Source of the DNA: Paraphysomonas bandaiensis
Lineage: Eukaryota; Protista; Chrysophyceae
Direction: 5' to 3'
Length of the DNA stretch: 64,000 nt
Assembly (NCBI GenBank): GCA_965644295.1
Contig: CBFFRP010000431.1
Span: 310,001 to 374,000 of the forward strand
This document shows, piece after piece, positions 7,601 through 28,630 of the stretch (its first letter is position 1; each line of letters starts with the position of its first letter). The notes under the pieces were generated by a model, which saw only the letters and a program-made list of their open reading frames with translations, did not search any database and had not been told where the DNA came from. The position numbers and the translations under genes are program-made.

Positions 7601-10600
7601 GACAACGATAAGAATCCCCAAATATGTAAGGTGATGTGCAATTTGTTGCAGAGCATGTGTCGCGATGGAAGAGGTATCGTTGAGGAAGAGTTGTGTCAAA
7701 GTGGAATTGCATGTGAAATTGCGTCATTTCTATCTGCACATGAAGCAATATTGCATCCCGACATCGCCCAGGCCGTATTAATGCTGGCTGTTCACTTTGC
7801 TGTAAATATTCCTGAGCTTAGATCTGAGTTGCTCTCTGCTGGTATGGTGGAGGTATTCAAGTTATATTCCTCGAAGAAATGGAGCGATAAAATTAGAAAA
7901 GCGGCTATACGTGCCTGTAAAAGTATATCCCCTCAGGAAAACATTCTAAAGTGTCAAAAAGATTTAGAACTAGCGTCAAAGGAAGATCAGGAAGCTGCAA
8001 ATAAAATTGCCCGGGCTGCGTACATGCATGTACATTACAAACGTGAAAGAGAAAAATTTAGTGAAAATCGAACAAAGCTTGAATATCATATTAACCATGT
8101 AGGAGCCTATTCAGATTGTGCTACTCTCTCTCAGTGCCTTCAGTTCAGTGTTGAGTGCAGTAGCACTGTGTTGGCGTCAAAGACCTTCGCGAGACTACGA
8201 GTACTTTGTACGGAGGGGGAAACCGAAATTTCTCTTGACTTTCTGAAATTAATATTGGATACCATGGTCGTGTTTTTAAGTCGTACAGATGTTCAGCGTA
8301 GCGGATTAAGTATTCTACAACAGTCGACTGGAGATAGTAGTCAGTATGAAATTATAGGTAGATTAGGGGCATGTGATGTAGTGAACCTGATCCTCCTGCG
8401 CCATTCCTCAGATACAAGCTTGTGCACTTCATGTGCATCATATGCGGCCAATTTAATTTGCGGTTCCCCGAAGAACATACCGCTGCTGTGTTCCCAAAAA
8501 AGCTGTGAAATTTTGTCACGCATTATGAAAGCAAACTTTGTAAATACTAAACTCATGCACCATATATGTGTCATCGTGAGTGAACTGAGTACGTACTCTG
8601 CGGCCTTTAGAGAAATGCTTGGATGCAGTGGTGTGTGTGAATGTTTGGTATCGTTTTTACGTGCGAATCCCGGTGATGAATACTGTGTGGGTCTTTGCAC
8701 GAAGACTATTTTAAGTTTATGTGTTGGCGAACACCCCAACATTGTTGCATTTTCGTCAAGGGAATGTCTGCATATTTACTCTAATATATTAACCGAAAGT
8801 AGATCTAACCCGAAAATATGCAAGCATATGTGTATGTTACTGGCAACAGTGTGTGGCAATGGTGAAGGTATGGTGAGCGAAAGTCTCTGTGGTTGTAGAA
8901 TTGCTGCAGTTATAGCGAAGTTTTTATCGGATGATGATGGGGAGCTAAGCAGTGATGCTGCCCAAGCCGTACTGATGCTGGCTGTTCACTTTGCTGTGAA
9001 TGTTCCTGTGATGCGGTCTGAGTTACTCTCTGCAGGTATGGTGGAGGTATTCAAGTCATATTCCTCTAAGAAATGGGCCGACAAGATTCGAAAAGCAGCC
9101 ATGTTAGGCATTCGAAAAATTTCCCCATCAGTGACACCTATAAAGACGGCTCACGAGTTGAAGGAAGAGGCTGCGCTACAGGAGAGTGCAGCGAAAATAA
9201 TAACTCGCAGTGTCAATTATCACATTGCAGTGAAGCGGAAGAAGGAGATAATCAATAAGGTCAAGGCTGGCAGACAATATCATTTGAGTCAAATTGCCAG
9301 CTGCTGTAATGCTGACTCTATTTTAAACTATGTAGATTTATCTGTTGAGTGTGGAGACCACCAACTGGCATCGAAGGCTATGTCAAGATTGGTAGATATA
9401 ACGAGAAAGTGTAGTTCTGAGGTTCAGGAGAGGATTATTACGAGGATGCGTATAATTTTGGGTGGGATGTTCTCATTTTTAAGTATTAGTTCCGTACAGC
9501 GCAATGGCTTGACCCTGATTCACCATGTGTCTCCTTACGGCGTCGATGTTGCTGGTATATTAGGGGAGCACTGCGGATGTGATCTGGTACACGGTATTCT
9601 TCGCAGGCATGTGTCAGATTATATGCTCTGTACTTCCGCGCTTCATTTGTGGTGTGCATTGCTAGATAATTGTTCCGCATATCGGATACCAATGTGCAGT
9701 CCGAGATCTTGTGAAATCATTGCCAATCTCATGAAAACTCATCATGCTAGGACGACGGTAGTAAATCAAGTGTGTGAATTGATCTCCAAATTGAGTTCTT
9801 ATTCATCGAGTAACAGAGATGTCCTTGGACAATGTGGTGTATGCGGTTTTGTTATTACCTATCTTATGAATAATGTTGAGAACGAAGCAGCATGTGAGGC
9901 ATGTATCTCTGCTATTTCGAGCTTGTGTCGAGAGTATCACGAGCAGAATCGACTTATTCTTGGATCGTCAAAGCATATTTCCCTCTATGTAGAGGTCATT
10001 CGGGCTAACGTGCAAAATTCTAAAATTGTACATCTGATGAGCAACATTATCGAGATGGTTTGCGATAGAAACGATGCATTTGCTGCTAAGGAAGTATTTG
10101 AGAGTGGTGTTACCATGGAATTATCCAATATATTGCGGATTTCTGAGGAGATCGAACAGGACTCACTTCCTTTAGAAACGGCGGAGGCACTTGTCGTTCT
10201 TGTCGCATTTATACTTGTCAACTGTCCCATTACGAGACCGCAGTTTGCCTCCGTGGGCATGTCGTATATATTAGAGCAATACACCTGCGATAAATGGAAT
10301 GATGTAACTATCAATTTTGCAAAACTTGGAATCGGCAAACTGTACGGACATCGAACTTCAAATGTCAGTGCTGATTTAAAATGTGGCAGTCTAAATTCCT
10401 TTCGAAATAGTAGAAACATGGTAGAAGAAGATCGAACAATTGAGAAGTGTGTCATTGGGTCAAGCAGTCCTGATGCATATTCATTCGCAGAACAGTCGCA
10501 AAGCGTCTGCGATGATAACGATTTCCATGGAGGTGACCTTATGCGGAGTACTTCTGCGATATATCATATATTCGGAATAGATTCTACCGTTACAAGTGAG

Positions 10601-13600
10601 TTTGAAGATTGCCATTCCAGTGGCATAGAGAATTGTGCTATTCTAAATGCAGGTGAAAATTTTTACTGTAGATGATCTGCTGTGTATTTTATCCGATATC
10701 AGTGAAATATCTGTATAATGTAAGTCTAATTTGTAGATGAAGTTGTTGGGCTGGGAGACAGTGAGAAAGAACTATTGGTTGCTGTGAACGCTGCCACAGA
10801 AGAAAAAGTTATGGAATACTTACGTCTGGCAGTAACCTCTGGAAATTCGAAATTAGGTGAGTGGGCCGTCGTACGAGCTCATCACCTTAGCAGTGAAAAA
10901 ATGAACAGCTGTATACTCTCTAAACCTCGAGTATTGTTGGACGTTATGTCAGCTTTTCTTGGGTTAACAAATACAATTATTGCCAGTAAGGGTTTATCGA
11001 TTTTACGACGACTATCTTTCGGTCCAGGCGATACAACTAGCATTGGAAATGCAGGTGGTTTTGAAGTGATAAGTGCGATATTACAAATTCACTCGTCGAG
11101 CAGTGAGCTATGTATGGCATGTATAGATTTTGGGATACAGTTAGCGGAGGAATGTGTTCAAAATCGAATACAAATGGTTAAAGAAGGAGTATGTGAAGCC
11201 ATAGTATGTGTCAGGAATACACACAAGAATAGAAATGACATTGTTGGTAGGTGCTTCGTATTTGTGAGTGTATTATGCGCCGGATGCTCACTTGCACAAC
11301 GAAGATTTGGTGATGTGAATATTCACGACCACGTCATAAAGCACCTATTAACCAACATCCCCGACGAAGCTGTGGTCCATATGTGCGCGAATACGATAAT
11401 AAGTTTATGCGAGGATAGAAATACAGAATGCTTCAAAGTTTTAGCGGCAGCGAAAAATCTTCGTTTGTATTTTAATATCATACGTAAAAGTTTGTCAAAT
11501 ATAAGTATATGTTCGGATATGATTCGGGTCCTGTCCGCCCTGTGTGAGGAAGGGGGAGCTGTTATAAACAAAGAGTTGTGCGAAAGTGGTATAGGGACGA
11601 TGTTAGCTTCAGTTCTTTTTGGCGAGAAAGTTGGCCTTGTAGCTGATATACAAGAAGGGTTTGTTCTACTAACGGTGCACATTGCTACACATATACCCAT
11701 TATCCGCCCTGAGTTAACCGCTTCCGGTATGATCAACATACTGCAGCAGTATACAACAAATGAATGGGGCAGACAGATTCGAACTAAAGCACGTGAGGGT
11801 ATCGAATTGTTGTTAGCGGGGGTTGATTTGGTTACAACCTCAGTTGAGGTTACCGACGACGAACAGTTAGTGCTAGAATCCTTGCAGATAGCAGCGCGGG
11901 GTTCCAATTATAATCTTGCAATGAAAACAGTTTCGAAGATTATTATGTTGCTCTCACCGCTGGATGGAAACGTGCGTAGTTTGCCCCTTGGATGGGCACT
12001 TCTTAAAAATCCAAATTTTGTTGTGGATGCGATAAATGCCTACAAGGATAGCACCGAGTTGGTGGAGAAAGGGCTTTCCATCCTACGAAAGCTACCATAT
12101 AGCCCCAATGACTACTCCAGAGTTGGGGCAGCTGGTTGCAATAACGTGGTATGCTCGGTGCTACGGGCACATGTATCTGATCGTGATGTGTGTGGTACAG
12201 CGTTGATATACGGAATGACACTCACTGCTCAGAGTCTGGTGAACCGCGTTCATATGGGAAATGAGGGCATATGTGAAATTGTATTAGAGGCATGCAGAGC
12301 GCACAAACTCGAATCAACTGTTATGGATAAGTGCTTTGGGATAATGTCAACGCTGTGTGCAGATTGTCCACAAAATCAAAGCAGGTTGGGAGAGGGACAG
12401 ATATGTGATGTGTTCATAAAGCATTTGGTAGCGCATATTGATAATTCTGAAATAATAAGGACTTGTACGCATGCAATTATAGCTCTCTGCAACCGACACA
12501 ATGACAACAGGAAATTATTTGCTTCAGAAAAGTTTATTCTGCTGTGCATTCATGTTATAAAGACCAATCGCACTTCCCTTGACGTGTGCACGAGTATGTG
12601 TACAGTGATGACCAATTTGTTTGGATGTACAGATGAAATCGATTTAATTTTATGTCAGAGCGGAATCGCCCAGGAATTGTATGAAGTCCTGACAGATAAG
12701 GATGATAATAAGCTTGCTGCTGGTGTTGCATGCGAGATACTAGCAATGGTTGCCCATTTTTTGCAGCATGTTCCATGTATGCGATCTGAATTTGCGGCCG
12801 CTGGAATGGTGAGTGTGCTGAACATGTACCAAACTCGCGGAAATGATATGAGGACACGGGAGAGTGCTGACATTGGGATGCATTACTTAACTTCGAGGAT
12901 TGAATTTTTGCTTGATATTATTGATACGTGTATAGAACCGAATCTAATTTGTGAGTGCTTGAAAGTCGCAACAGGTAGCCGTAATGTGGTGCTTGGCTTA
13001 AGAGCAGTGCACAGAATTTACAACCTTACTGATTGTGACGACAGTTCGAACCCTGTAAATAGGGAATTGATATCGACTGTGCTGCAGTACTCTAGCTTAC
13101 TAACTAGTACAATGATAAACTTCTCACTGCGTGAAGACCTCCAGCAGAAAGGTATAGCGATATTACAGCGCCTACACTATGGCCCTGGAGATGTGGAGCG
13201 GGTTGGATCAACCGGTGCTGTTACAGCAATACGAAACATATTTCAAAGCTACATTACCAATGGGACGTTGTGTTCGGAATGCCTTGCTTATGGGACGAAA
13301 ATATCCTCGATGAGTTTAGGAGTGCGGATAGAAATGGGAACTGAAGGTATATGCGAGTGTGTTTGGAATGTATGCACAACACACAAGAAGGACTTAAAGC
13401 TAGTCGCCTTGTGTCTCAGAATGTTTTGCGCACTATGTACAGACTGTGTAGACAATCAAATCAGAATAGGCAGTGTTGAAACTTGTGCTCTAGTGTCGGC
13501 TCTGTTGAACGATAATATTCACAACGAATGGATGGTTGGTCTATGCTGTCACACTATTGCAAGTTTGTGTTCTGGGAGTAATGAGAAGATTTGCGATCAT

Positions 13601-16600
13601 TTTATCGATGGTGCAAGTCTACGGAAATATGCCATGATAATACAGTCCAATACCGACAATGCAAAAATCTGCAAGCACATGTGTTTGTTATTGTTATCAC
13701 TATATGGTAAGGGAGAGGGCGTGGACAGGGCACTACGGGAAAGCGATCTTGCAGCTATTCTCACGGATATCTTGTCTACGTCCGGTAGTGGAAGTACCCT
13801 GACTGCCGATATTGCCAATACTCTTGTTATGTTTGTAGTGGATTTTATTTCAAATGCTCCAGTCATGAAGAAAGAATTTATATCAGCTGGGCTAGTCAGT
13901 GTGTTGCGGCGTTACACCGACGACGACTTCAGTGATGCGACCAGAAAGGCAGCTCACATTGGAATGAAGAAATTAGTTCCACGGATTGGTGTCCTTATCG
14001 ACTCTGTGCAGGGTACTCACAGTATAAAAGTTATCATTGAAGGGTTAGAAGTTGCTATGGAATATCGCTGCCGTGATTTGGCGGCAAAGGCTATGTGTCG
14101 ACTAAGTGAACTTTTAGCCTGTGTGTCAACTGAAGATAAAAATGAAGAGAATTTATTACGACGGGAAGTTCTTCAAACTATTAGTGTTATCATAAAAGTG
14201 GCGACGGAATTCATCGACGCTATAAATGTAGTTGAGAGTGCACTTGATGTCATACAGCAACTCTCTGAGTCATCTGATGACATTCGTGCAATTGTTTCGT
14301 GTGGTGGATTCGTGTTGCTACGGTCAATATTGGACACACATGCCTCAATCGCTACTATATGTTCTGCATGTCTTGTATATGGCACACACACTGCAAGTGA
14401 CAGTATCAGAAATCGAATTGATATGGGAAAGTCAGGATGCTGTGAATCTCTTTTAGGTGTATGCCGCGCACACGAAAATAATGTGGAGATGATGAGAAAG
14501 TGCTTGCATTATATGTCGGTGCTCTGCACAGATTGTCCGGATAACCAAGATGCTTTTTGCAGTGGAGGTGCATGCGGGGTTGTCATCAAACACCTCATTT
14601 CTAATATGGCGGAGGTGTCTGATGTCAGTATTTGTGCCCAAACCATATTGAGTTTATGTTCTAATATGCATCTTGGAAACCGCAGGGTATTAATTTCTGA
14701 GAAGCATATGCAGTTGTATATTAAAGTAGTTCGCTTGTCCTCGCACAGTTCAAAAATATGTAAAATTATTTGTGCGCTTTTTGTTGGCCTATGTGGATCA
14801 AGTGATAGTGTTACAGACGAAGTACTACCTGTGTGTGGTGTCGCCACTGAACTGCGGGATATGTTGTCTATAGAAAATACTGAAAAACTAAGCTCTGGTG
14901 TTTCACAGGGTTTGGTTATGCTTGTTGTACACATGGCGGTGAAAATTCCATCGATGCGCCCTGTGCTGCTGTCTGTGGGGATGACTAATGTTCTACGTCG
15001 CTTTACTCTGCCGGAGTGGAATGATGTCGTTCGCCATGCAGCTGATACTGGTATTCGTAAACTTATTCCGCGTATGGCGATGCTAATGGACACCTTAAGT
15101 GAATCCACTGATCCATCTTTCCTTACTGAATGTTTGCAGTCAGCAGTAGAATGTGGGTACCAACCTCTTGCCGAGAAAGCGATAGGTGTCATTGAACATA
15201 TGATTAGTAGAAGCAACCCTAAGATCTTATCCTCTATATGTGATATACGTGAAGTGGTGTGTACGCCTGTGTTAATGGATGTGCTTTGCACTTTTTGGTT
15301 CAATACCAAAATTTGTGACAAATGTTTTTCTATCATCACGGAATATCCGTATACATCTGGGGATGCGGAGATGATTATATCATTGGGGGGGGCAGACAAG
15401 TTTCGGTCTTTGCTTGAAAAATTTCTCACAGATTCTAGATATTGTCCTCTCTCTTTGTCGTATGGTTCGGCATTGTTATCGGATAGTCTGTCGAACAAAA
15501 TCGCGATGGGACAGCATAATATTTGTGAGTGTGCAGTTCTCGTGTGTCAAATGCATGCGAATGATGCACACATTATGACTAAGGGCTTGTCTATAATATG
15601 CGCTCTATCAACTGAATGTGTGGAGAATCAAAGGAAGTTTGGACGCGAAGATTTTGCTGAGGTTGTATTGACGCACTTGTCTAGGCACAAGCTTGATAGT
15701 CTTGTTGTGGAACTTTGTGCTCGTACTATTTTGAGTATTTGCGCTGGTGGTAAATGTGAGAATCATTTACACGTATTCTTGTTACCGTCGTATATTCGGG
15801 TGTATTTCGATGTTATACGATCCAGTGCTACAAACGCCAAGATATGTAAATGCATGTATTCGGTCGTTGTTGTACTCTGTAAAAACGAGAAAACCAATGT
15901 CATTGACAGTTTGCGCAGTAGTGGTATTGCAAGCGACATAGCCAGTTTTTTGCGATTTTCTATCGATGCAGAAAAAGTTCGAGAAGTGGTACAATTAGCA
16001 GTGATGCTAGTAGTGTATCTTATTGTGAACTATCCCTCACTGGCTGGCGATTTCATTGACGTTGATATGGTTAATGTGTTGAAGTTGTACATTTCAGGCA
16101 TTTGGAGTGAAAAGACTAAAAAGGCAGCGAGAACTGGAATCAGTAAGTTGATTGCTGAAGCTAGTCGTGTCGTCACACTTGATGCTGATCGTGAAAATCC
16201 TGAACCTAATTCTATAGTTGCTACATTAGCAATGGGGTTCCCAACTTCTGATTTGTCATCCGACTCACTGCAATCTGACTCACAATCTACAGACATTCCC
16301 TACTTGATTTTATGTCTAGAAAAAGCGGTTGTTGAGAACAGTGTTGACCTAGCACTAACTTCGGGCTTAAAAATATATGAGTTGCTATCGTCACAAGACG
16401 TAGGTCCTGAAGAATTGCTTGCCGTGGTAAAAGCGACAGCAAAAGTTATAGAAAAGTTTATAAAAAATACGGACTTGTGTAAACTCTGTTTAGACTTACT
16501 GTCTCGAACGGAACATGACAGTCAGATGATTGAAACTTTTCATTTAGCCCCCATTGTAGCATCCGTGCTTGACACACACCAGTCTGACCCCAGTGTGTGC

Positions 16601-19600
16601 TGTGCATGTGTGGATTATGGAATATGTTTGGCATCGATAGATGTGAGTGTGCGGCTTTTGTTTGGTGAACATGGTGTTTGTGATTGCGTTTTGGCTGTAT
16701 TTCGAAGGCACAGCAACATCGCTGCTGTCGCTGATAGATCTCTCAGGTTCATATGTGCGCTATGCAGAGATTGCCCGTCAAACCAGGATAAACTTGGGAA
16801 CGGCGGTGCTTGTAGTTGTGTTATCGAATGTCTGTCGGAATATATAACAAATAGCAATGTTGTGATCTCAGGTACGCATGCCATTGCTTCGCTTTGTGCG
16901 GGGCATGGCATCAACAACAACCGTTATACAATGACTTCTACGAGGCCTTTACAGCTATACATGGAGGTGATTCGTATGAACCCCATGAGTGGGGATACTT
17001 GTAAAGGTATCTGTTCACTTCTTGTGGCACTTTGCGGTAAGGGCGAGGGTAAAGTTGGAGAGCAAATGATGGATAGTGGTATATCGGACGCGTTGTTGGT
17101 TATGCTGTCATGTACTGATTCCGATCGAGCATTTAGCATAGATGTTCTGACCAATCTGGTTATGTTAGTGGTTCACTTTGTCCTTAATATTCCTGCGATG
17201 ATGTTTAATCTGGCATCAGTTGGTATGGCAGGTGTTCTTTGTGAATATACCTCGGCCCCATGGAACGAAACTGTTCGAAAAGCAGCTGCCGCAGGTGTGA
17301 AGAAATTGACCAGTTTGGAGTCAAGGGAACCGCTAACTAAACCATTCATTCCCCATTCTGTGGAGTCAAATTTAGCGACTACGGATTCTTCGTTGCGTCC
17401 AGAAAGTACACTTAATCAGCTACCTTCAATATATCCCAGCAGTTATCAACAAGACATTGGTCTACCTGGAAGTGATGATCGACGAAACAATGACCATGTG
17501 CTGCAGCCAGTCCATAGTAATTCTATGACATCGTCGGATGTGAGCTCTTTGTTATCATTTGTAGAGATAGCCGCAAATGAAAGCGATGTGGATGCAGTGC
17601 TTCATTTGTTCCGTCGACTACGATCTATGTTGCTAGACTCGCCTAATGGAAAAAATATTTCTGCGATACAAGAAGCATCAGGAAAAAAGTTTGTAATCTT
17701 ACATGCATTAGCCTCATATCTTAACAACAACGAGCTTATAAAAACTGGGTTGGAAGTTATGCAGATAATCTCCCTCCATATTGGGGATGGTGAATCATTT
17801 AGCCTGACAAATGAAATTGACATGATTTGCTCCATATTGAAACAATACGTAGTCGATGCAGATATATGCTCGGCTTGTGTGAAATATTGCTCTGTACTAG
17901 TAGCCGAACAAAAGGAAATATGCGTTAACATGGGTAAAGCTGGTGTATGCAACGCTGTTGTGGATGTCATGAGAGCGCAGCTAGAAAAAACTGGAGTTGT
18001 TCTTTGTTGTCTTCCACTTGTACGTGTGCTCTGTAACGAATGTGATGACAATCGAAACAGGTTCGGTGAGTGTGGTTTGTGCAGTCTAGTAATCAAATTT
18101 ATGCTTCCAAATTTAGCGGATGAACATATTGTATCCACGTCTTTGCAAACGGTGGTGGCTCTCAGCGCAAATCAAAATGCGATTAACAGCAAAGTATTGA
18201 CGTCTTCAAGTCATTTTCAATTGTATATTCGTGTCCTTCGCCTACATTCGACGAACCCTGTGATATGCGATTGTATATGTACTCTTATGATCGCTTTGTG
18301 CCGAAGTGACCAAGAAGGTGTTGGTGCTGATATAGTAAAAAGTGGAATTATTCGTGAGTTGGCAGAACTGCTTACCCGATTTGTGAACAGAAGTCACTTT
18401 GATCCTGAAGTCACGTCAGCAATTGTGTTACTTGTAGTACATTTCGTTGTAAACGTTCCTATGACAGTTTCCGAGTGCTTGTCTGTTGGCATGATCGACG
18501 TGCTTCGTCCCTACACAACTGGTGATTGGAACAACAAGGTTCAAAATGCTGTTAATATTGCCATTCAGAAACTTTCATCGCGAGATGAAAATATATGTAA
18601 TACTTTGCGGGTGATACTTCCAGAAGAACAACCTGGATCTCGTGATATGGACGTCACAGAAGCTACCAACGAGGGTGGTGCTGCTGTTGATACCAGTCAA
18701 CATACGGGGTTTCAAGAAGTTGCTATACCTTCAGAGTTACTTTCTAATATCAGCACTTCTACAGATGTCTTGTTCTTGTGTGATTGCTTCAGGAGTGCTG
18801 CCACGAACAATAATGAGGTTATCGCTGATAGTTGTGCGAGCCGGATTCGAGCACTTGTCTCGGGTACAGGACAAATCAATGGGAATAAAGTCGTTAAATC
18901 CTTGGCTGCCGTTAGAAGTGAACTCTTTGCGGCATTTACAGAATTTTTGGAGAGCGACTCTGTAACTTCGAATGGGCTATTTATACTGCATATGTTACTG
19001 AGTCCTTCTGCAGAGACTAGCGCTGTGGTATCAAACCATGAAGTCATGTTTGTCACTTCTGCGTTGCAATTAAATATGTTTTCATCTTACTGCTCTCTAA
19101 TACTCGAGTGTGGTACATTACTAGCTGATAGTGGAGAAGAGAGCCGAACTCGACTCTGCTCAAACGAGATGTGTAAAAGTGTTGTCCAAGTATTACGAAC
19201 TTACCAGAGTAACTGGGATATCATGTTGAAATGCTTCAACCTGATATGTGCACTATGTAGAGGTGATTTGGTTAATCGTGACAAATTCGGCCATTCAGGA
19301 GTAGCGACTGAAATGATTGGTTACTTGAGAAATAATATGGCAAATGAAGTGATAGTTAGTAATTGCCATCGAGTCATTACTGTACTTTGTACAGAATGCG
19401 TGTTAAATAGGGAAAAATTTGTTGCCGATATCAACCTATATGTCGATATTATCAAAGGTAATGTTAAAAATGCACGCCTGGTTAAGGGCACATGCGCTTT
19501 GCTTGTTGTTGTGTGTGGTAAAGGTGAAGGTAGCGTTGGCGAAGAGATGATAGAGAGTTCTATTTGCCAAGAGTTTATCAGACTCCTCAATGATCATGCA

Positions 19601-22600
19601 AGTGGAGATCAGTTGAATCGAGATGTGGCTACCAGCCTACTAATGTTGGTGGTTCACTTCGTTGTCAATATTCCCATATTGACCCCTGTGCTGGAGTCAG
19701 CGGGAACAATCGATGTTCTTCGGCGTTATACAACTAGTGATTGGAATGATATTGTTCGAAAAGCTGCCTCTATAGCTATCAATAAGTTGTCGGCGTTTGC
19801 ACTGTCCTCATGGGATAAGAAGTCAAAAGAGGATTTCCGATCAAATAGCCCCGGGATAAATTCAATGGAAACAAGTGAACAAGACACGAAATCTATCTCA
19901 CCTGTATCAAATGTACCATCCACTTTTCCTACTGCTAGCACTGTTGCCCATGGGCCTTGTAAAGTTGACGGAGTTGTCGCGGATGATGAACGACAAATGC
20001 AGCCAACTGGAGTAGGACATGACAACAGTAGTGGAACTGCGCAGAGTTTTGACACTGGAGATAATGCACCGAATGCTTGTGACGTGGACAATGCCAAAGA
20101 CAATTTACGTCCTGAATCAGTCCCGAACAGGAACGAGACAACTATTGAGGTGACTGATGATACCTCTCATTTTCAAAAAGAGCCTGCAACTACCAAGCGC
20201 GATTCTGTTGTGGCAGGTGTTTTATCTGTTCTAAAGGTGGCAGTTGAAGAAAGGAATTTGGGTAAATCAATGTCTAGTTTGAAAGAAATAAGGTCTGTGA
20301 TGTCAGATACCGATTTATCTTATAGAGAATCTTATCGCGAAGGAATATATATATCCCAAGGCCTAATCATTAGTTGTCTATCTTTATTTTCTGACAATAC
20401 GTCCCTTGTTGTAGTGGGTTTAGATGTGCTGCGAATGATCTCATCTAATGAAATCTCAGCTGATGAAGCGAAATTACTTCGCGTTATTCTACAGATTCAT
20501 ATTTCCAACAGAGTATTATGTTCTCGAATTTTGTTGTATGCAACAGCTCAGGCCACGAAAGTTGTCACTAATCGTATCGAAATGGGAAAGACCGGTATAT
20601 GTGAGGTCGTTGCAGATGTGTGTGCACGTTACAAAGATGATAAAGAAATTGTGATTTGGTGCTTGCAATATGTTGTCGCCATGTGTACTGATTGTTCGAG
20701 TAATGAAATTATATCAGTACAGTGTATTAAAAATATCGTTGCATCATTGGAGGTTCACAAATCGTGCGAAAGTACTATTAGTACCTTCGCCGAAGGCTTT
20801 ATTGCTCTTTGTACTGGGGCGAACTCTCAAATCCTGACGTTTTTCTCAACCTCACCTACGCTTGAGTTGATTTTTAAAGTTCTCAAATGTAATGGCGGTA
20901 GCGTAACGGTATGCAAAAGTCTTTGTAGTTTTTTAGTTTTGCTATTCGATAGAGGCCGCACGTTGATTAACGACAACATACAGTATGTGACAGTTTCGAA
21001 AGGGATAGTGGACGTGCTTTCTGATCACAACTGTACAAGTACTTCTGAAGCAGCTACAACTGTTGTCATGATGGCTGTATATGTCGTATTAACTATGCCA
21101 ACTATGCACCCTGCTTTGGTTTCTGTTGGTGTGATAGACGTTTTTCGCCGATTCACTACCAATGATTGGAGTAGTGCAGTGAAAAAAGGCTGTTACGTCG
21201 CCATAAAGAAACTGTCGATGCTGAGAATAGTATCTAACGCATCCAGCGTAAATGATAAGCAGAGTGAGTCAAGAGTACATCGTACAGATGAAAATGAAGT
21301 GGTAGAAGAAGTACCTGATGCAATTGATGAATCATCCGACACTTCGCATTTACTGTCCTATCTAGGAAAAGCTATTGATAGTAATGATCTGGATTTGGCT
21401 ATGTTTTCAATGAGAAGAATTCTGGCTATAGTTTCCAATTCTGGAGATCTGAAATCAGAGAATTTACTCGCAGTGAAGGAAGTTGCTAGTCAAGTGAACA
21501 CTATATTTAGTGTTGCATCTGTTTTTATTGAAGATGCAAATGTTGTGACAGCATGTTTGGATGTTCTGCAGCAATTGGAATATGACGACGCGGATATCGA
21601 TGCCATCGATAGTAGTGGCAAGCTTGGTGTAATAAGTGCTATATTGCAGGAGTACGTATCAGATGGTGCGATATGTTTACTTTGTATGGATGTAGCGATC
21701 AGGCTAGCCGCAGAAAGTGAGACAATTCAGCTAGAGCTAGGTGATAAAGGGATATGCGAGAGTGTCATAGAAGTGTGCCAAGCTCACGAAAATGATAACG
21801 GCGTCGTTGAGAAATGTATCGTACTTGCTACCGAACTGTGCACTTCTTGCAGAGATAATCGTGACCGATTTAGCGAAATCTCTACTTTGAGCGACGCTGC
21901 TAAGCTTGTGATTAATGCTGCTGTGGATTATCCTGAGAAGGGTGTTATTCATGCCATTAAAGTTCCGTATGTAGAGGATTCAGTAATTTCTACATCTGCA
22001 ACTAGCCAGATGGGCAGTGGTGCCAACGAAGTGGTGAAGGAAGTAGCCGATAGGTCAGTGAATGTGAACGACAGAGTGGACAGTAAACACTTGGTCGATA
22101 AAGCATCTGAAAATGTAACAAATGCCATGAGTGCAACCAATGAAACCTCTAGGGATGCTGTTGCTAAGTCGCTTGCTACTAATACACATGAGTTACCATC
22201 GGTCCCGAGTGAGAAAAATGTGACTGAATTATCTAATGCAATTGATGAATCAACCGACACTTTCAAGGAAGAAGCCGATAGGTCAGTGAATGTTAGCGAC
22301 AGAGTGGACAGTAAACACTTGGTCGATAAAGCATCTGAAAATGTAACAAATGCCATGAGTGCAACCAATGAAACCTCTAGGGATGCTGTTGCTAAGTCGC
22401 TTGCTACTAATACACATGAGTTACCATCGGTCCCGAGTGAGAAAAATGTGACTGAATTATCTAATGCAATTGATGAATCAACCGACACTTTCAAGGAAGA
22501 AGCCGATAGGTCAGTGAATGTTAGCGATAGAGTGGACAGTAAACACTTGGTCGATAAAGCATCTGAAAATGTAACAGATGCCATGAGTGCAACCAATGAA

Positions 22601-25591
22601 ACCTCCAGGGATGCTGTTGCTAAGTCGCTTGCTACTAATACACATGAGTTACCATCGGTCCCGAGTGAGAAAAATGTGACTGAATTATCTAATGCAATTG
22701 ATGAATCAACCGACACTTTCAAGGAAGAAGCCGATAGGTCAGTGAATGTTAGCGATAGAGTGGACAGTAAACACTTGGTCGATAAAGCATCTGAAAATGT
22801 AACAGATGCCATGAGTGCAACCAATGAAACCTCCAGGGATGCTGTTGCTAAGTCGCTTGCTACTAATACACATGAGTTACCATCGGTCCCGAGTGAGAAA
22901 AATGTGACTGAATTATCTGATACAATTGATGAATCAACCGACACTTTCAAGGAAGAAGCCGATAGGTCAGTGAATGTTAGCGACAGAGTGGACAGTAAAC
23001 ACTTGGTCGATAAAGCATCTGAAAATGTATCAGATGCCATGAGTGCAACCAATGAAACCTCTAGGGATGCTGTTGCTAAGTCGCTTGCTACTAATACACA
23101 TGAGTTACCATCGGTCCCGAGTGAGAAAAATGTGACTGAATTATCTAATGCAATTGATGAATCAACCGACACTTTCAAGGAAGAAGCCGATAGGTCAGTG
23201 AATGTGAACGACAGAGTGGACAGTAAACACTTGGTCGATAAAGTATCTGAAAATGTAACAGATGCCATGAGTGCAACCAATGAAACCTCTAGGGATGCTG
23301 TTGCTAAGTCGCTTGCTACTAATACACATGAGTTACCATCGGTCCCGAGTGAGAAAAATGTGACTGAATTATCTGATACAATTGATGAATCAACCGACAC
23401 TTTCAAGGAAGAAGCCGATAGGTCAGTGAATGTGAACGACAGAGTGGACAGTAAACACTTGGTCGATAAAGCATCTGAAAATGTATCAGATGCCATGAGT
23501 GCAACCAATGAAACCTCTAGGGATGCTGTTGCTAAGTCGCTTGCTACTAATACACATGAGTTACCATCGGTCCCGAGTGAGAAAAATGTGACTGAATTAT
23601 CTAATGCAATTGATGAATCAACCGACACTTTCAAGGAAGAAGCCGATAGGTCAGTGAATGTGAACGACAGAGTGGACAGTAAACACTTGGTCGATAAAGT
23701 ATCTGAAAATGTAACAGATGCCATGAGTGCAACCAATGAAACCTCTAGGGATGCTGTTGCTAAGTCGCTTGCTACTAATACACATGAGTTACCATCGGTC
23801 CCGAGTGAGAAAAATGTGACTGAATTATCTGATACAATTGATGAATCAACCGACACTTTCAAGGAAGAAGCCGATAGGTCAGTGAATGTTAGCGACAGAG
23901 TGGACAGTAAACACTTGGTCGATAAAGTATCTGAAAATGTATCAGATGCCATGAGTGCAACCAATGAAACCTCTAGGGATGCTGTTGCTAAGTCGCTTGC
24001 TACTAATACACATGTGTTACCATCGGTCCCGAGTGAGAAAAATGTGACTGAATTATCTGATACAATTGATGAATCAACCGACACTTTCAAGGAAGAAGCC
24101 GATAGGTCAGTGAATGTTAGCGACAGAGTGGACAGTAAACACTTGGTCGATAAAGTATCTGAAAATGTATCAGATGCCATGAGTGCAACCAATGAAACCT
24201 CTAGGGATGCTGTTGCTAAGTCGCTTGCTACTAATACACATGAGTTACCATCGGTCCCGAGTGAGAAAAATGTGACTGAATTATCTGATACAATTGATGA
24301 ATCAACCGACACTTTCAAGGAAGAAGCCGATAGGTCAGTGCATGTTAGCGACAGAGTGGACAGTAAACACTTGGTCGATAAAGTATCTGAAAATGTATCA
24401 GATGCCATGAGTGCAACCAATGAAACCTCTAGGGATGCTGTTGCTAAGTCGCTTGCTACTAATACACATGAGTTACCATCGGTCCCGAGTGAGAAAAATG
24501 TGACTGAATTATCTGATACAATTGATGAATCATCCGACACTTCGCATTTACTGTCCTATCTAGGAAAAGCTATTGATAGTAATGATCTGGATTTGGCTAT
24601 GTTTTCAATGAGAAGAATTCTGGCTATAGTTTCCAATTCTGGAGATCTGAAATCAGAGAATTTACTCGCAGTGAAGGAAGTTGCTAGTCAAGTGAACACT
24701 ATATTTAGTGTTGCATCTGTTTTTATTGAAGATGCAAATGTTGTGACAGCATGTTTGGATGTTCTGCAGCAATTGGAATATGACGACGCGGATATCGATG
24801 CCATCGATAGTAGTGGCAAGCTTGGTGTAATAAGTGCTATATTGCAGGAGTACGTATCAGATGGTGCGATATGTTTACTTTGTATGGATGTAGCGATCAG
24901 GCTAGCCGCAGAAAGTGAGACAATTCAGCTAGAGCTAGGTGATAAAGGGATATGCGAGAGTGTCATAGAAGTGTGCCAAGCTCACGAAAATGATAACGGC
25001 GTCGTTGAGAAATGTTTTCGACTCGTTTGTGAGCTCTGTGATGATTGTCCCGAGAATCAAGACCGCTTTGGGCATCTTTCGGTTTCTAGTCATCTTGTGA
25101 AGTACTTGATCGGTAATATGAAAAACGAGTCTGGTGTTGGAATTTGTGCTCGTACCATTATGAGTCTCTGTGCTGATAATCACCAACATAACCGAAGTGT
25201 GCTTGTGTCGCGCAAACACCTTCGACTCTACACTCATATAATTCGCAAGAACTGTAAGAATTTGAAAATAACACGCTTTGTTTGCACTCTACTTGCTGGA
25301 TTATTTAAAACAAGCGATGAATATGGTGACGAGGAACTGGTCGAAAGTGAGATTGCCTACGATTTAGCTTCGCTGTTGTCTGCTTATTTTGAAAAGTCTT
25401 CACTGACTAAAGAGGTAGCCCAGGCTGTCGTCATTCTTGTTGCGCATTTTGTGATTAACATTCCGGACATGAGATACGAGCTGGTGGCTGCAGGAATGAT
25501 TAAATTGCTAAGCCGTTTTAGTGGAAGCGAATGGAGCAGTAATGTAAGAAAGACTGTGCCGGTAGCGATCCGTATGTTGGAGAAAGTGTAG
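1677..25591 (+). CDS. Giant (~7,900 aa) IQ-motif / armadillo-like tandem-module protein; spliced gene joining ORFs 2093-10675 and 10775-25591
   Basis: Phase-1 intron 10653-10736 (GCA G|gtgaaaat...aatttgtag|AT GAA GTT) joins the two ORFs in frame, and the same ~350-400-aa module recurs on both sides. The frame is open upstream to ~1868. Probable first exon starts at ATG 1677 (MRLFPATPPSKPK...) with donor at 1787; the exact 5' splicing is unresolved. Canonical IQ motif FATKIQAIYRTYRIRK near 2264. Cys-rich ARM-like helical repeats (e.g. 'LCRDCPSNQDKLGNGGACSCVIECL'). Confidence 0.8.
10653..10736 (+). other. Spliceosomal intron (84 nt) linking the two giant ORFs
   Basis: GT donor, branch-like 'tctaat', 'ttgtag' acceptor. 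Removing it skips the TGA at 10673 and keeps the frame. Confidence 0.8.
21321..21817 (+). repeat. Copy 1 of a ~497-bp direct duplication (first half of an ARM-like module)
   Basis: Appears identical to 24519-25015 (offset 3198); the protein IDESSDTSHLL...GVVEKC is repeated verbatim. Confidence 0.95.
22037..24542 (+). repeat. Coding tandem array: 11 x 228 bp (76-aa unit, S/T/D/E/N-rich)
   Basis: Unit starts aaggaag(t/a)agccgataggtcagtg at 22037, 22265, 22493 ... 24317; only a handful of positions vary. Confidence 0.97.
24519..25015 (+). repeat. Copy 2 of the ~497-bp direct duplication
   Basis: Matches 21321-21817; this copy continues into a complete final module. Confidence 0.95.
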
Positions 25592-26248
25592 ATAATTTTA
25601 AACTATTATCTATGTGGGGCATGTTGTAAATAGTTTTATGTGTAAATTTCGTTTGTAAAATTAAAAAATCATATGGTGCTGATTAAAACGCAATCCAATG
25701 TTTTTACCGTTTTGGTAATAAAATATTGATACCTCAGTGCTATTCGGTTTTCGTAATTCGACTAGTTTTTGTATCAGTACACTAGTGTGCGTCCTATGTA
25801 TGTCATCTATTTGACAAAGAAGAATTATTTGATGGTTTAGTAGAAAATCCCAAAGTAGCTTCAATTGTAGTTAATCTAAACGTGTTAAGAATACGTTTTC
25901 TCAAAATCGCCATTACACTAAAAATAAAGTACACATTAAAGCTTCAATATGAAAGTGATTAGTTGATTAATACAATTTAGAAAAATTTGGGCTGCATTTT
26001 TTCCAGCAATCAGTTATCCGAAAGTGTCATATGCTGGTAGAAACAACAATAAATTATAATTCTGGTAAGGATACTAGGGCTACACCCTGTTTCCTCAATT
26101 CTTATCAAAATCGACCTCGGCGGTTCGTGTGCTGAACACAGAGCTCCCTCGAGGCATATAATATTGTAAAAAACAAACATAGAAATCAAAATTGAAGATA
26201 TTTTCTGTAGCAATATTGTAGCAAAATAAAGTATTTTCAAAGATCTGA

Positions 26249-28630
26249 TTAAAAAGCCGCAGAGACAGTCGCAGCCTGGACGGGTTGAGCACCCTTGATT
26301 TTTGACTCCTTTAGACCCACCCCTGACGAACCACGCTCAATATTGATCGACATGGCACGCTGAAGCTCCTCGTTTGTGATCTGAAAAGCAAAGCTCGCTT
26401 TATTCTGTGTTTCGTTGACTGCCATAACTCCAATAGAGGCACATAGACCCATAGCTGGAGATTTGACGTAGTGTTTGTCATAAACCATCTTATTCATCAC
26501 ACTCTCTACTGTGAGAGAAGAAGGAATGTATGCAGGCAAACCGAGAGTAAGGATAGCATCGTAATGCTTTTCCACACAGGCAGAGTCACAAAGGCCTCTC
26601 ATCAGCGCAACCTCAGCACTCACACACATACCAATTGCCACTGCCTCGCCATGAAGCAATGGGGAGTTAGTCGACCATGACAGCGACTCCACAGCATGCC
26701 CCACTGCGTGGCCATATTGCGGACACATTTCATTGAAGTCAGAGTTGTGATAGTTGTCTAAAGTAGGCGCCTTTATCTCAATACAGTCCTTGCAGATCAT
26801 TTCCAAGTACTCCCCGTCGCGAAAACACGCACTTCCCCGCTTTCGTACAGGTTCCACAATGCGATTAACCATCTCTTCAGACTGACAAAACGCATGTTTA
26901 ATTGCCTCTGCGATGCCGTTTTGTATGTGCCTCGTGCTAAGAGAAGAAACACATTCCGGATCGATTACAACTTTCGACGCAGGATAATAGCACCCCAACA
27001 AATTCTTGCCACGGGAGTGGTTTACCGCCTGTTTGAAGTCTAATGCAGCATCCAGCATGCCCATTGTGGTGGTGGTAAAGTGTACCAAGCCAATGCCGCG
27101 GTACAACATACTCGCCAAAACACCACAGAGATTATTTACCACTCCTCCACCAACTGAAATAATACAGGAGTGCTTTGTAATTCCCTCCTTCAAAATCATC
27201 TCCACACAGTTGTTAAGGACCGTGGTGGTTTTATAAGGCTCCACACTTGCCTCGCCAGACTCATCAGATGTCTCGGCTGGTATAACAACAGCTTTACAAG
27301 TGACCCCTGCTTTCTCCATCGCCTTGATAAAGTTGTTTTCTACGTCCAACACGCGATAAACGATCTCGTCAGTGACAACGTAGTTCTTGGAATCCAGACT
27401 GACGGCCGGTAGAAGTTCACGACAGTACTGATCCAGCTCCTTTATAACTCCTCTCTTCATGAAAATCTCACTCTCGAGTCTGCGGCCATCGCGCCCGAAG
27501 GAGTTCATATACACACCGCGCTCGTCAGTAGAACCGGGTTTTACGAGAGGTTGATTGGGTAGCTCAGGATGTGCAGTCGGCAGCATAATGCGCTCACGGC
27601 GGGAGTCGTATAGATTAAAATCAAACCAGGGTACTTGCACATACCGATGGTGGCGATCCAATTGGTCGAGCATTGCCATCTCGTCCACTGAAAGACACCA
27701 ATCCAAGATATCGATATTAGACTTAATGCGGGAGGTAGTTAAACTCTTGGGAATAACACTGACACCACGTTGAATATTCCAGCGAAGGACAACTTGTCCT
27801 GGGGTTCGATTCAGTGCTTCAGCAATCGATACTACCACTGGATCGTCCAATAAATTTAGATCACCAGGATTTTTATATCCAGGTTTGCCCAGTGGTGAGT
27901 AGGCCACCACGTGAATATCATGAGATTGACAGTATTGCAGTAGATCATTCTGAGCAAGATAAGGATGCATCTCAATTTCATTAGTTATGGGCTTGATTTT
28001 GCATCGCTCGAGAAGGCTCCCCAGAAGAATGTGGTCGAAGTTGGACACACCGAGGCTACGAGTCAGTCCTTTGCGAACGAGGGACTCCATGGCTTTCCAA
28101 GTTTTTGCCAAGGCTTCGACATCACATACGTGAACGACTTCATACTTAAAGCCACCACCAAATTCGTCGGAGACACGGGTACCGGTACCCGATTTCCATT
28201 GAGATGGCCAGTGCATCATATAATTGTCAACGTATGACAGACCCAACCGTTCAAGGGTACCCACTAATGCAGGTTCGACATCCTTAGGGTCATGATCATC
28301 ACACCATAGCTTACTGCATATATAAAGGTCTTCGCGACAAACGAGACCTTCATCAATACACTCTCGTATAGCAGCTCCAACTTCCTTTTCATTCTCATAT
28401 AGTTTTGCAAGATCAAAATGCCGATAACCACATTTTATTGCCTCCTTAACAGCGGAAGCAACTTTATCATGGTCAGTAAAGCTGTTGAATGTTCCAAACC
28501 CTACAAGGGGAGGGAGGATTCGATCGTTTAATGAGTATAAGCTGGATACACTGTTGGATGATTCATTATCTGATTGACTGCTATCCACACAAGTCTCACT
28601 GCTATATCCACGAAGTATCATGTCGTTCAT
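26249..28630 (-). CDS. Fusion: aldo-keto reductase (aa ~38-335) plus 2-deoxy-scyllo-inosose-synthase-like sugar-phosphate cyclase (DHQS superfamily, aa ~385-770)
   Basis: Single 793-aa intronless ORF. AKR motifs: GFGT, GYRHFDLAKLYENE (D, Y), ICSKLW (K), MMHWP (H), LGVSNF, EIEMHPYL, AYSPLG, VIPKS. Cyclase motifs: EPYKT, VGGGVVNNLCG, YRGIGLVHFTTT, DFKQAVNHSRGKNLLGCYYP, GIAEAIKH, QYGHAVGHAVE, LLHGEAVAIGM, YDK. Confidence 0.9.
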   Translation of the reverse strand: MNDMILRGYSSETCVDSSQSDNESSNSVSSLYSLNDRILPPLVGFGTFNSFTDHDKVASAVKEAIKCGYRHFDLAKLYENEKEVGAAIRECIDEGLVCREDLYICSKLWCDDHDPKDVEPALVGTLERLGLSYVDNYMMHWPSQWKSGTGTRVSDEFGGGFKYEVVHVCDVEALAKTWKAMESLVRKGLTRSLGVSNFDHILLGSLLERCKIKPITNEIEMHPYLAQNDLLQYCQSHDIHVVAYSPLGKPGYKNPGDLNLLDDPVVVSIAEALNRTPGQVVLRWNIQRGVSVIPKSLTTSRIKSNIDILDWCLSVDEMAMLDQLDRHHRYVQVPWFDFNLYDSRRERIMLPTAHPELPNQPLVKPGSTDERGVYMNSFGRDGRRLESEIFMKRGVIKELDQYCRELLPAVSLDSKNYVVTDEIVYRVLDVENNFIKAMEKAGVTCKAVVIPAETSDESGEASVEPYKTTTVLNNCVEMILKEGITKHSCIISVGGGVVNNLCGVLASMLYRGIGLVHFTTTTMGMLDAALDFKQAVNHSRGKNLLGCYYPASKVVIDPECVSSLSTRHIQNGIAEAIKHAFCQSEEMVNRIVEPVRKRGSACFRDGEYLEMICKDCIEIKAPTLDNYHNSDFNEMCPQYGHAVGHAVESLSWSTNSPLLHGEAVAIGMCVSAEVALMRGLCDSACVEKHYDAILTLGLPAYIPSSLTVESVMNKMVYDKHYVKSPAMGLCASIGVMAVNETQNKASFAFQITNEELQRAMSINIERGSSGVGLKESKIKGAQPVQAATVSAAF

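Follow-up and report, generated by a model that had tools for sequence, protein, structure and literature searches.

The window, which is the whole 64,000-nucleotide stretch of Paraphysomonas bandaiensis DNA that was analysed, contains an intronless open reading frame of 793 amino acids with an ATG start. The ORF listing and Pfam searches agree with the original prediction of a single intronless gene that joins an aldo-keto reductase (AKR) to a cyclase of the 3-dehydroquinate synthase (DHQS) superfamily. The linker expected between the domains is present, at a length of about 60 residues rather than about 50. The features are listed below; DOIS stands for 2-deoxy-scyllo-inosose synthase.

26249..28630, (-) strand: complete open reading frame, 793 aa, with N-terminal AKR, linker and C-terminal sugar-phosphate cyclase (ORF listing, Pfam, colinear 2,434-nt contig)
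27656..28501, (-) strand: AKR domain, aa 44-325, AKR1/AKR4-like (PF00248, Aldo_ket_red, E 8e-50)
28412-28414, 28397-28399, 28310-28312 and 28211-28213, (-) strand: codons of the AKR tetrad D73, Y78, K107 and H140 (alignment to AKR1A1)
27470..27655, (-) strand: inter-domain linker, aa 326-387 (gap between Pfam/NCBIfam envelopes; no family match)
26315..27469, (-) strand: sugar-phosphate cyclase domain, aa 388-772, DHQS fold, DOIS-sister family (PF01761, PF24621, AlphaFold, Foldseek, phylogeny)
27131..27151, (-) strand: GGGVVNN, aa 494-500, glycine motif of the NAD site (column counts, 93 eukaryotic and 27 bacterial members)
27020..27040, (-) strand: DFKQAVN, aa 531-537, in which Lys533 corresponds to BtrC Lys141 and DHQS Lys152 (alignment, column counts)
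26696..26734, (-) strand: NEMCPQYGHAVGH, aa 633-645 (alignment to BtrC, column counts)
26252..26314, (-) strand: C-terminal tail, aa 773-793, poorly conserved (pLDDT fall at the model end; pN 0.30 against the paralogue)

One run, presumed to be RNA, contains a contig of 2,434 nt that is colinear with positions 26193-28626, without joints, and covers neither flanking intergenic region. It begins 4 nt inside the annotated ATG, so translation may truly start at Met4. This RNA-like contig fits a single unspliced transcript that carries both domains; separate transcripts for the two halves, which would have spoken against a fusion, are not what it shows. A metatranscriptome contig at 26060-26387 holds the final ~140 nt of the frame and ~190 nt past the stop, and alone is no proof of transcription. 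The genome also contains a dispersed paralogue (contig C79; 798 aa) with identical architecture, 88% amino acid identity and 77.6% nucleotide identity. Between the two copies, synonymous sites are saturated and pN is 0.04-0.07 in the AKR, the cyclase and the linker (0.064 in the linker). The fused frame is thus under purifying selection, which is strong on both paralogues. The second copy is not a haplotig, as the match is limited to the coding region and the flanks are unrelated. Bacterial contamination was likewise ruled out: the neighbours in the window are eukaryotic (ARM giants, PTEN-like, Urb2, RWD), and in Prymnesium and Nitzschia the homologues are carried by chromosomes of megabase size.

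The best PDB match of the AKR domain is the aldehyde reductase AKR1A1 (257 bits), with all four tetrad residues aligned. The Pfam domain and the tetrad place the protein in the AKR superfamily (AKR1/AKR4-like), and the complete reductase that had been predicted is indeed there. Of 37 fused homologues, most keep the Asp-Tyr-Lys-His tetrad. Because AKR1-type reductases are promiscuous, the fusion by itself leaves the substrate of this domain unfixed.

The cyclase domain matches DHQ_synthase (PF01761, aa 463-570, E 1e-26) and DHQS_C (PF24621, aa 572-720, E 3e-22). Its AlphaFold model has a pLDDT of 93.8 and a pTM of 0.92. Foldseek aligned the model with DHQS, DOIS, DDGS and ValA structures at a TM of ~0.75-0.88, with E ~1e-26 against DHQS and DOIS. 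The four types all fall within this range, so the fold cannot tell the subfamilies apart. Every motif quoted for this protein in the original prediction is present in the frame: PYKT (465), GGGVVNN (494), YRGIG (510), FTTT (518), DFKQAVN (531), RGKNLLGCYYP (540), QYGHAVGHAVE (638), LLHGEAVAIGM (658) and KHY (688). The BtrC motifs with which they had been compared agree with a HMMER alignment to PDB 2d2x.

Residues were counted column by column in 120 aligned members of the family (93 eukaryotic and 27 bacterial) and in reference sequences. The metal-ligand triad Glu/His/His (E575, H641, H660), the catalytic K533 and G494-G496 of the glycine-rich NAD motif are invariant in the members and in the references. 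Together with the domains and the fold, they identify a sugar phosphate cyclase. The positions aligned to BtrC Asp135, Lys141, Asn145, Lys150/Asn151, Glu183, Lys186, His246, His250 and His262, which we take to have catalytic roles, are conserved. Within NEMCPQYGHAVGH, His641 aligns with a BtrC residue that is presumably a metal ligand, and His645 is likewise conserved. The family has a signature of its own, invariant in all 120 members: GGGV[VI]NN, DFKQAVN, E..KH, NEMxPQYGH and DKH. The Asn-Asn of the first motif is Gly-Asn in DOIS and Gly-Asp in DHQS. KQAVN is common to DOIS and the family, and the Asp-Phe ahead of Lys533 is family-specific. The same stretch NEMCPQYGHAVGH holds an invariant Glu634 at the position of DHQS Arg264 and an invariant Gln638 at the position of DOIS Glu243 and DHQS Asn268. 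A placement of these two residues one helical turn apart was considered and is unsupported; by the secondary structure of the model, Glu634 belongs to a short helical turn and Gln638 to the loop after it.

Homologues of this cyclase are labelled "3-dehydroquinate synthase" in source annotations, and the PDB DHQS match (124 bits) is near that to BtrC (129 bits), which is the best. A divergent DHQS, fused for aromatic or quinate metabolism, was therefore weighed. The protein shares with AroB/AROM enzymes the Pfam domains, the fold and the equivalents of Arg130, Lys152, Asn162, Glu194, Lys197, Lys250 and Lys356. However, it scores 197 bits against TIGR01357 (aroB), below the equivalog cut-off of 305. 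It has Glu634 and Gln638 where Arg and Asn stand in every AroB and aDHQS reference; we take these, Arg264 and Asn268 in A. nidulans numbering, to be DAHP-binding residues. It also reads GGGxxNN in place of GGGxxGD, and KQ in place of GGKT. In its 669-contig assembly, the completeness of which is not established, the host has no shikimate pathway. In these 62.6 Mb, chorismate synthase, EPSP synthase, DAHP synthase I and II and DHQS-II gave no match (PF01264, PF00275, PF00793, PF01474, PF01959), and PF01761 with PF24621 was found solely in the window gene and its paralogue. As a positive control, PGK was recovered exon by exon from the same genome. On these comparisons a DHQS function is effectively excluded, and we give hardly any weight to this explanation. 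The case that had been made against DHQS is strengthened by the AroB cut-off, the two substituted residues and the absent shikimate enzymes alike.

The best annotated plasmid matches of the cyclase are DOIS (132 and 125 bits); the others listed score at most 116, and annotated aroB about 100. An IQ-TREE C20 phylogeny, with a DOIS set that includes the Micromonospora echinospora and Streptoalloteichus tenebrarius enzymes, supports the family (100/100), the DOIS clade (100/99) and a sister relation between the two (99/95). The family stands on a long branch outside the DOIS clade of 2-deoxystreptamine aminoglycoside producers, and the SH7PC, DDGS and EboD references group in a clade apart (100/99). 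Grouping of the cyclase with DHQS, which would have contradicted the original prediction, is thus not what the tree gives. An earlier AU test with sparse references did not reject a family+DHQS grouping (p = 0.146). After the reference set was enlarged by 14 NCBI-named DOIS and by more AroB, SH7PC and EboD sequences, both family+DHQS (p = 0.034) and family+SH7P cyclases (p = 0.034) were rejected, marginally.

The protein has the DOIS-type Asn of GGGxxxN (N500) and K533-Q534-A-V-N537, both missing from the DHQS and SH7PC references, so these motifs had been read correctly as DOIS-type. The fold and the positions aligned to the Glu/His/His metal ligands of BtrC are also shared with DOIS, as is the lack of DHQS Arg264. 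However, position 243, a Glu in BtrC (E-Y-G-H-T) and in all five context-supported DOIS references, is Gln throughout the family; Glu243 presumably helps phosphate elimination. Four residues upstream, the invariant Glu634 replaces Gly/Ala. Asp531-Phe532, His579 and His720 are further invariant active-site differences, and KH stands for KN and DKH for DNK. No aminoglycoside cluster surrounds the window gene, and it lacks a DOI aminotransferase as partner. On this sequence evidence the family is a separate, uncharacterised sister clade of DOIS and not a canonical DOIS. The original description as a DOIS-like cyclase is correct in that the protein is closer to DOIS than to DHQS or SH7P cyclases, but strictly speaking the protein is no DOIS.

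The tree also bears on a sedoheptulose-7-phosphate cyclase of the EEVS/EVS/DDGS type, with the AKR reducing a C7 valiolone- or gadusol-type ketone to a C7 cyclitol. In eukaryotes, SH7P cyclases occur in the gadusol pathway (PMC4426668), and their fold is indistinguishable from that of the window cyclase. They and the DDGS and EboD enzymes are, like this family, non-shikimate clades, some of them in eukaryotes. Yet they fall in a separate clade that the family is disfavoured from joining by the AU test above, and none is fused to an AKR. The motif G-H-T-[FW]-S-P is not found in the window protein; Pro and Asp of the SH7P cyclase references are replaced by His645 and Gly667, and their Met by Lys620. 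We regard such a C7 pathway as highly improbable.

A less remote alternative keeps the bifunctional cyclitol synthase and changes its chemistry. Another sugar phosphate (mannose-6-P, galactose-6-P, GlcN-6-P or GlcNAc-6-P), or re-reduction of C4 from the opposite face, would give an epimeric or substituted deoxy-inosose for the AKR to reduce, and there would be no DOI or scyllo/vibo-quercitol pathway. The invariant active-site signature distinct from that of DOIS and the separate clade on a long branch speak for it. Substrate and product differ from one sugar phosphate cyclase clade to the next, and one of these clades, EboD, uses mannose-6-P (review PMC12904256). On the other side, glucose-6-P is the substrate of all the nearest characterised relatives, and the GGGxxxN Asn and KQAVN are held in common with DOIS. 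We consider this alternative rather unlikely, though well worth keeping in mind. To our knowledge, every newly characterised cyclase clade to date has brought a new substrate or product.

The fusion is not peculiar to the source organism. A search for the same architecture found an AKR in 42 of 93 eukaryotic homologues; it is absent from the other 51. All eukaryotic members fall in a single clade, which lies beside or within the bacterial ones. The family is widespread among marine eukaryotes that dominate ecologically (diatoms, haptophytes, pelagophytes, chrysophytes and choanoflagellates); euglenids, an amoebozoan and a red alga have it too. Nitzschia inconspicua, Prymnesium parvum and Ochromonas CCMP1393 are among the carriers. 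The family is also present in uncultured bacteria. At all six bacterial loci, the deepest-branching pair included, an SDR ketoreductase lies directly after the cyclase or is fused to it. Eukaryotes use an AKR and bacteria an unrelated SDR, so a reductase has been coupled to this cyclase twice, independently. This lends support to the ketoreduction of the cyclase product that had been proposed.

The two domains could still be catalytically unrelated, with the AKR serving as a general reductase of aldehydes or sugars and the fusion due to co-regulation or historical accident. Both the generic, AKR1A/AKR4-like nature of the reductase and the homologues that do without it would suit this explanation. 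However, the fusion has been retained over many lineages with a constrained linker, and the bacterial pairing with an SDR arose independently. We judge it improbable.

We propose instead, with a probability of roughly 0.6, that the window gene encodes a bifunctional deoxy-cyclitol synthase, which would convert a sugar phosphate through a deoxy-inosose to a ring polyol. The protein would be cytosolic. In the first step, the C-terminal cyclase would use NAD+ and a metal ion to act on a sugar phosphate; a hexose 6-phosphate, for example glucose-6-P, is the most probable one. The reactions would be those of DOIS and DHQS (transient oxidation, phosphate elimination, re-reduction, ring opening and intramolecular aldol closure), and the product a deoxy-inosose, a carbocyclic hydroxy-ketone. 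In the second step, the N-terminal AKR would reduce this ketone with NAD(P)H to a deoxy-inositol-type cyclohexane polyol, such as a quercitol-like pentol or a close relative. In yeast that expresses btrC, DOI is reduced to scyllo- and vibo-quercitol (PMC7348060). Which substrate is used, how the product is configured and what role it has are inferences. The invariant Gln at DOIS Glu243, the Glu at Arg264 and the other changes make glucose-6-P and 2-deoxy-scyllo-inosose plausible as substrate and product, not established.

The pathways to aminoglycosides, C7N-aminocyclitols, mycosporine sunscreens and gadusol begin with sugar-phosphate cyclases. The types covered by a 2026 review are DHQS, DOIS, EEVS, EVS, DDGS and DEIS, and no family like the window cyclase is among them (PMC12904256). 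Among deoxy-cyclitol osmolytes, cyclohexanetetrol is documented in diatoms and Isochrysis, and proto-quercitol in thraustochytrids. Published data on cyclohexanetetrol or quercitol exist for Isochrysis galbana, Pavlova lutheri, Chaetoceros muelleri, Nitzschia ovalis and thraustochytrids. As originally stated, no biosynthetic gene for such algal osmolytes is assigned in the literature that we found; the titles and abstracts of the cyclohexanetetrol papers do not deal with biosynthesis. The microalgal setting first suggested for the gene does not apply, as the source is a marine heterotrophic stramenopile. Its HSP90 points to the neighbourhood of heterotrophic chrysophytes, matching an MMETSP transcript at 98%, Paraphysomonas imperforata at 87%, and an Ochromonas danica entry and Ectocarpus at 85%. 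A thraustochytrid source, which would have given a direct tie to proto-quercitol, was considered and rejected, since the close matches of HSP90 and of the cyclase include no labyrinthulomycete. We favour a role for the polyol as a compatible solute in this marine protist; by analogy with the bacterial operons, it might alternatively be the precursor of a phospho-cyclitol conjugate. The single intronless gene is a directly testable candidate that involves a single protein, a single sugar phosphate and a pair of cofactors. If the proposal is true, an osmolyte pathway that is rich in carbon and free of N and S would be added to marine metabolic models, and carbocyclic polyols would become accessible to biotechnology by a one-enzyme route.

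A broader reading is offered tentatively, and we think it somewhat doubtful as a whole: the DOIS-sister clade would comprise the missing enzymes for the deoxy-cyclitol solutes of marine protists, with a remodelled site and an AKR route, together with a bacterial CDP-cyclitol pathway. Among these solutes are 1,4/2,5-cyclohexanetetrol, which occurs in diatoms and haptophytes, and pentols of the quercitol type. Glu634, Gln638, Asp531, His579 and His720 may direct the reaction to an epimeric or further dehydrated inosose, which the AKR would reduce once or twice. In bacteria, a formerly unrecognised CDP-cyclitol pathway may place cyclitol-phosphate in teichoic-acid-like or capsular polymers.

Literature searches on AKR with DHQS-like domains, and on cyclitols with cytidylyltransferases, returned no description of the family or of its bacterial operon. 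At the bacterial loci, the cyclase and SDR are followed by an APH-like kinase and then by an NTP-transferase (nucleotidyltransferase), and TagF-like or CDP-alcohol transferases are often close by. In bacteria the cyclase is fused to the NTP-transferase, with or without the SDR, and in eukaryotes to the AKR; both arrangements differ from DOIS. We take Bcs1/TarIJ (CDP-ribitol) and LicA/LicC (CDP-choline) to be analogues of these operons. The operons of the bacterial relatives resemble them in having reductase, kinase and cytidylyltransferase-like genes with TagF-like or CDP-alcohol transferases, and an alcohol would similarly be made, phosphorylated and nucleotide-activated for a surface polymer; the analogy applies to the bacterial relatives and not to the window gene. 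Where those systems use ribitol or choline, the bacterial relatives would have a carbocyclic alcohol that the cyclase makes de novo.

The gene encodes a single protein in which an aldo-keto reductase (AKR) is joined to a sugar-phosphate cyclase of the DHQS fold:

26249-28630, minus strand: ORF of 793 aa with an ATG start (ORF listing)
aa 44-325: aldo-keto reductase domain (Pfam, E 8e-50)
aa 463-570 and 572-720: two halves of a DHQS-type cyclase (Pfam)
aa 401-740: alignment to the aroB model (NCBIfam)

This anatomy is confirmed. The motifs quoted in the original prediction were all found in place when the sequence was read, and the BtrC motifs given there match the HMMER alignment to PDB 2d2x. 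The AKR catalytic tetrad is complete, as claimed (D73, Y78, K107, H140). The AKR is of the eukaryotic AKR1/AKR4 type; its best match is the vertebrate aldehyde reductase AKR1A1 (257 bits), followed by plant AKR4 and AKR1B enzymes. No hydrophobic N-terminal signal is obvious by eye, so we take the protein to be cytosolic. The AlphaFold model of the cyclase is confident (pLDDT 93.8), and a Foldseek search with it did not separate subfamilies of the DHQS fold.

To place the cyclase, we chose references whose gene neighborhoods back their identity, and added sequences that NCBI names DOIS, among them the Micromonospora echinospora and Streptoalloteichus tenebrarius enzymes. The context-backed DOIS come from Burkholderia and Sodalis plasmids, where genes for DegT aminotransferase, PIG-L deacetylase, glycosyltransferase and radical-SAM proteins lie next to them. 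Sedoheptulose-7-P cyclases (SH7PC) were taken with ROK kinases, DDGS (one sequence) from a mycosporine cluster, EboD from the ebo cluster, aminoDHQS from the AHBA cluster, and AroB adjoining aroK or aroC. All four groups are monophyletic in the tree (IQ-TREE LG+C20, 62 sequences), with support of 100/100 for the family of the window protein, 100/99 for DOIS and 99/95 for the two together. Constraining the family with DHQS costs 7.8 log-likelihood units (AU p = 0.034), as does constraining it with the SH7PC/DDGS/EboD group (7.8 units, AU p = 0.034); with a sparser reference set the AU test gives p = 0.146. A sister relationship to DOIS is thus favored but not proven. Sequence scores agree with this placement. 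BtrC is the best PDB match, and the two best plasmid matches among those listed are annotated DOIS (132 and 125 bits); the other listed matches score at most 116 bits, and annotated aroB about 100. The cyclase had been called DOIS-like: DOIS is indeed its nearest relative, but it falls in a sister family of its own. The term should be read as a member of that uncharacterized family, with putative substrate and stereochemistry.

In an alignment of 93 eukaryotic and 27 bacterial members, the following motifs are invariant or nearly so, and in combination they set the family apart.

Signature motifs of the family, with the DOIS and DHQS equivalents
Family G-G-G-V-[VI]-N-N; DOIS GGGxxGN; DHQS GGGxxGD
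Family D-F-K-Q-A-V-N; DOIS S-x-KQAVN; DHQS GGKT
Family E-x-x-K-H; DOIS KN; DHQS Tyr in 3 of 5 AroB references
Family K-x-P; DOIS varies; DHQS varies
Family N-E-M-x-P-Q-Y-G-H; DOIS [GA]-x-x-x-E-Y-G-H-T; DHQS R-x-x-x-N-x-G-H-T
Family D-K-H; DOIS DNK; DHQS DKK

The Gln at the DOIS Glu position is therefore a fixed family character and not peculiar to this gene. The carboxylate of the family in this segment sits four residues earlier, at Glu634; we speculate that it might fill the role ascribed to Glu243 of DOIS.

Could the protein be the DHQS of the shikimate pathway? Its aroB equivalog score is 197, far under the NCBIfam cut-off of 305. Arg264 and Asn268 of DHQS, which we take to bind the DAHP carboxylate and phosphate, are present in every AroB and aminoDHQS reference and align with Glu634 and Gln638 here. 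In a six-frame profile search of the whole host assembly, PF01761 and PF24621 found two AKR-cyclase genes only. The same search gave no match to chorismate synthase, EPSP synthase, DAHP synthase of type I or II, or archaeal-type (type II) DHQS. The positive control was recovered exon by exon:

G000:C283:11965-13387 (host contig), minus strand: PGK gene, at least six exons

From score, residues and gene content, we discount a role as DHQS. The host appears to have no shikimate pathway at all, and is therefore a phagotroph or auxotroph. By its HSP90 it groups with stramenopiles, near the heterotrophic chrysophytes. The sequence recurs in seawater metagenomes.

The bacterial members, found partly in Patescibacteria, share a common core in all six loci inspected, the deepest-branching pair included:

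Core 1: small protein, matching CDP-alcohol phosphatidyltransferase in some loci
Core 2: the cyclase, N-terminally fused to an NTP-transferase domain in 5 of 6 loci
Core 3: SDR ketoreductase, next to the cyclase (five loci) or fused to it (one locus)
Core 4: APH/choline-kinase-like kinase
Core 5: second NTP-transferase, about 245 aa
Module loci: L021:7234-12327; L022:7153-12445; L023:8001-12302; L033:5247-12501; L034:5096-11726

TagF-like glycerophosphotransferases, glycosyl- and methyltransferases, ABC exporters and capsule genes are often nearby. The module has the look of a hitherto undescribed pathway to an NDP-cyclitol, which would go into a teichoic-acid-like polymer. In the simplest reading, the route would run from an inosose through a cyclitol, its phosphate and the NDP-cyclitol to the surface polymer.

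Irrespective of what is finally made, two lineages have paired this cyclase with a carbonyl reductase, and the reductases are of unrelated folds (SDR and AKR). This pairing in two lineages (in bacteria, at 6/6 loci) is the strongest support for the predicted reduction of the cyclase's ketone by the AKR. The chemistry is facile for DOI, since btrC-expressing yeast reduces it to scyllo- and vibo-quercitol (PMC7348060). The mechanism class, in which a sugar-phosphate cyclase and a ketoreductase yield a carbocyclic polyol, is well supported. Acting on glucose-6-P, the two steps would yield quercitol, a pentol; a route on to a tetrol is conceivable and would need an extra dehydration and a second reduction. 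A cytosolic nitrogen-free polyol in a marine protist would most simply be a compatible solute. Cyclohexanetetrol is a documented osmolyte of Chaetoceros muelleri, Nitzschia ovalis and Isochrysis galbana, and proto-quercitol is documented in thraustochytrids. The literature searched assigns no gene to the synthesis of either, and holds no description of the family, the AKR fusion or the bacterial operon.

The eukaryotic members group into a single clade (100/100), placed among the bacterial sequences or next to them. Members come from the diatoms Nitzschia inconspicua and Entomoneis paludosa, Prymnesium parvum (three copies), Ochromonas CCMP1393, Ochromonadaceae CCMP2298, the pelagophytes Pelagophyceae sp. 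CCMP2097 and Aureoumbra lagunensis, Chrysophaeum taylorii, Monosiga brevicollis, Salpingoeca rosetta, the euglenids Anisonema and Jenningsia, Stygamoeba regulata and the red alga Timspurckia. The architecture sought in other protists was found: 42 of the 93 eukaryotic homologues carry an N-terminal AKR, all inside a derived subclade of 71 sequences. Because basal eukaryotic lineages have the cyclase without the AKR, and the AKR is of eukaryotic type, the fusion probably arose within eukaryotes after acquisition of the cyclase from bacteria. One homologue (P0006, 935 aa) is matched by the cyclase query along >700 residues, a hint that it carries two cyclase domains in tandem.

We aligned contigs of X8, a run guessed to be RNA, to the window. 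A single contig of 2,434 nt spans 26193-28626 without joints or differences, both intergenic flanks have zero coverage, and the neighboring giant gene has its own 18-kb contig. Transcripts would be expected to look like this, subject to the guessed RNA label, and the contig fits a single transcript across both halves. A 328-nt contig from the X18 metatranscriptome (26060-26387) overlaps the ORF over its final ~140 nt and continues ~190 nt past the stop, which is not by itself proof of transcription. The X8 contig starts, at 28626, within the annotated ATG (28628-28630); Met4 (28619-28621) may be the true start, or the 5′ UTR may be extremely short or unassembled.

The host carries a second gene of the same architecture:

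G000:C79:98650-101046 (L010:829-3225), minus strand: AKR-cyclase gene, 798 aa

The two copies share 88% protein and 77.6% DNA identity; similarity ends at the ORF boundaries, and the flanks are unrelated. A database protein, P0001, is identical to the second copy across the cyclase domain. pS between the copies is saturated (~0.75-0.8) while pN is low (0.066 in the AKR, 0.064 in the linker, 0.039 in the cyclase), which argues that both are functional and old, junction included. We read the second copy as a paralogue that dispersed long ago and is kept under purifying selection.

Other features of the window are:

2093-10675, plus strand: intronless ORF of 2,860 aa, matching armadillo-type repeats
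10775-25591, plus strand: adjoining intronless ORF of 4,938 aa
32001-32906, plus strand: PTEN-like phosphoinositide phosphatase ORF (domains: PTEN C2, dual-specificity phosphatase)

The 4,938-aa ORF has long internal repeat blocks by eye. Near its C-terminal quarter (~22.5-24.5 kb) lie more than 10 near-identical tandem copies of a ~70-aa unit (SDRVDSKHLVDK...TNTHELPSVPSEKNVTELS), where AT skew jumps to 0.18. The PTEN-like ORF is 3.4 kb from the AKR-cyclase gene, a proximity that is probably coincidental. Four gaps between the matched pieces of PGK are only ~30-55 nt, so the host genome has tiny introns; in contrast to PGK, introns are absent from the AKR-cyclase genes, HSP90 and the giant ARM genes.
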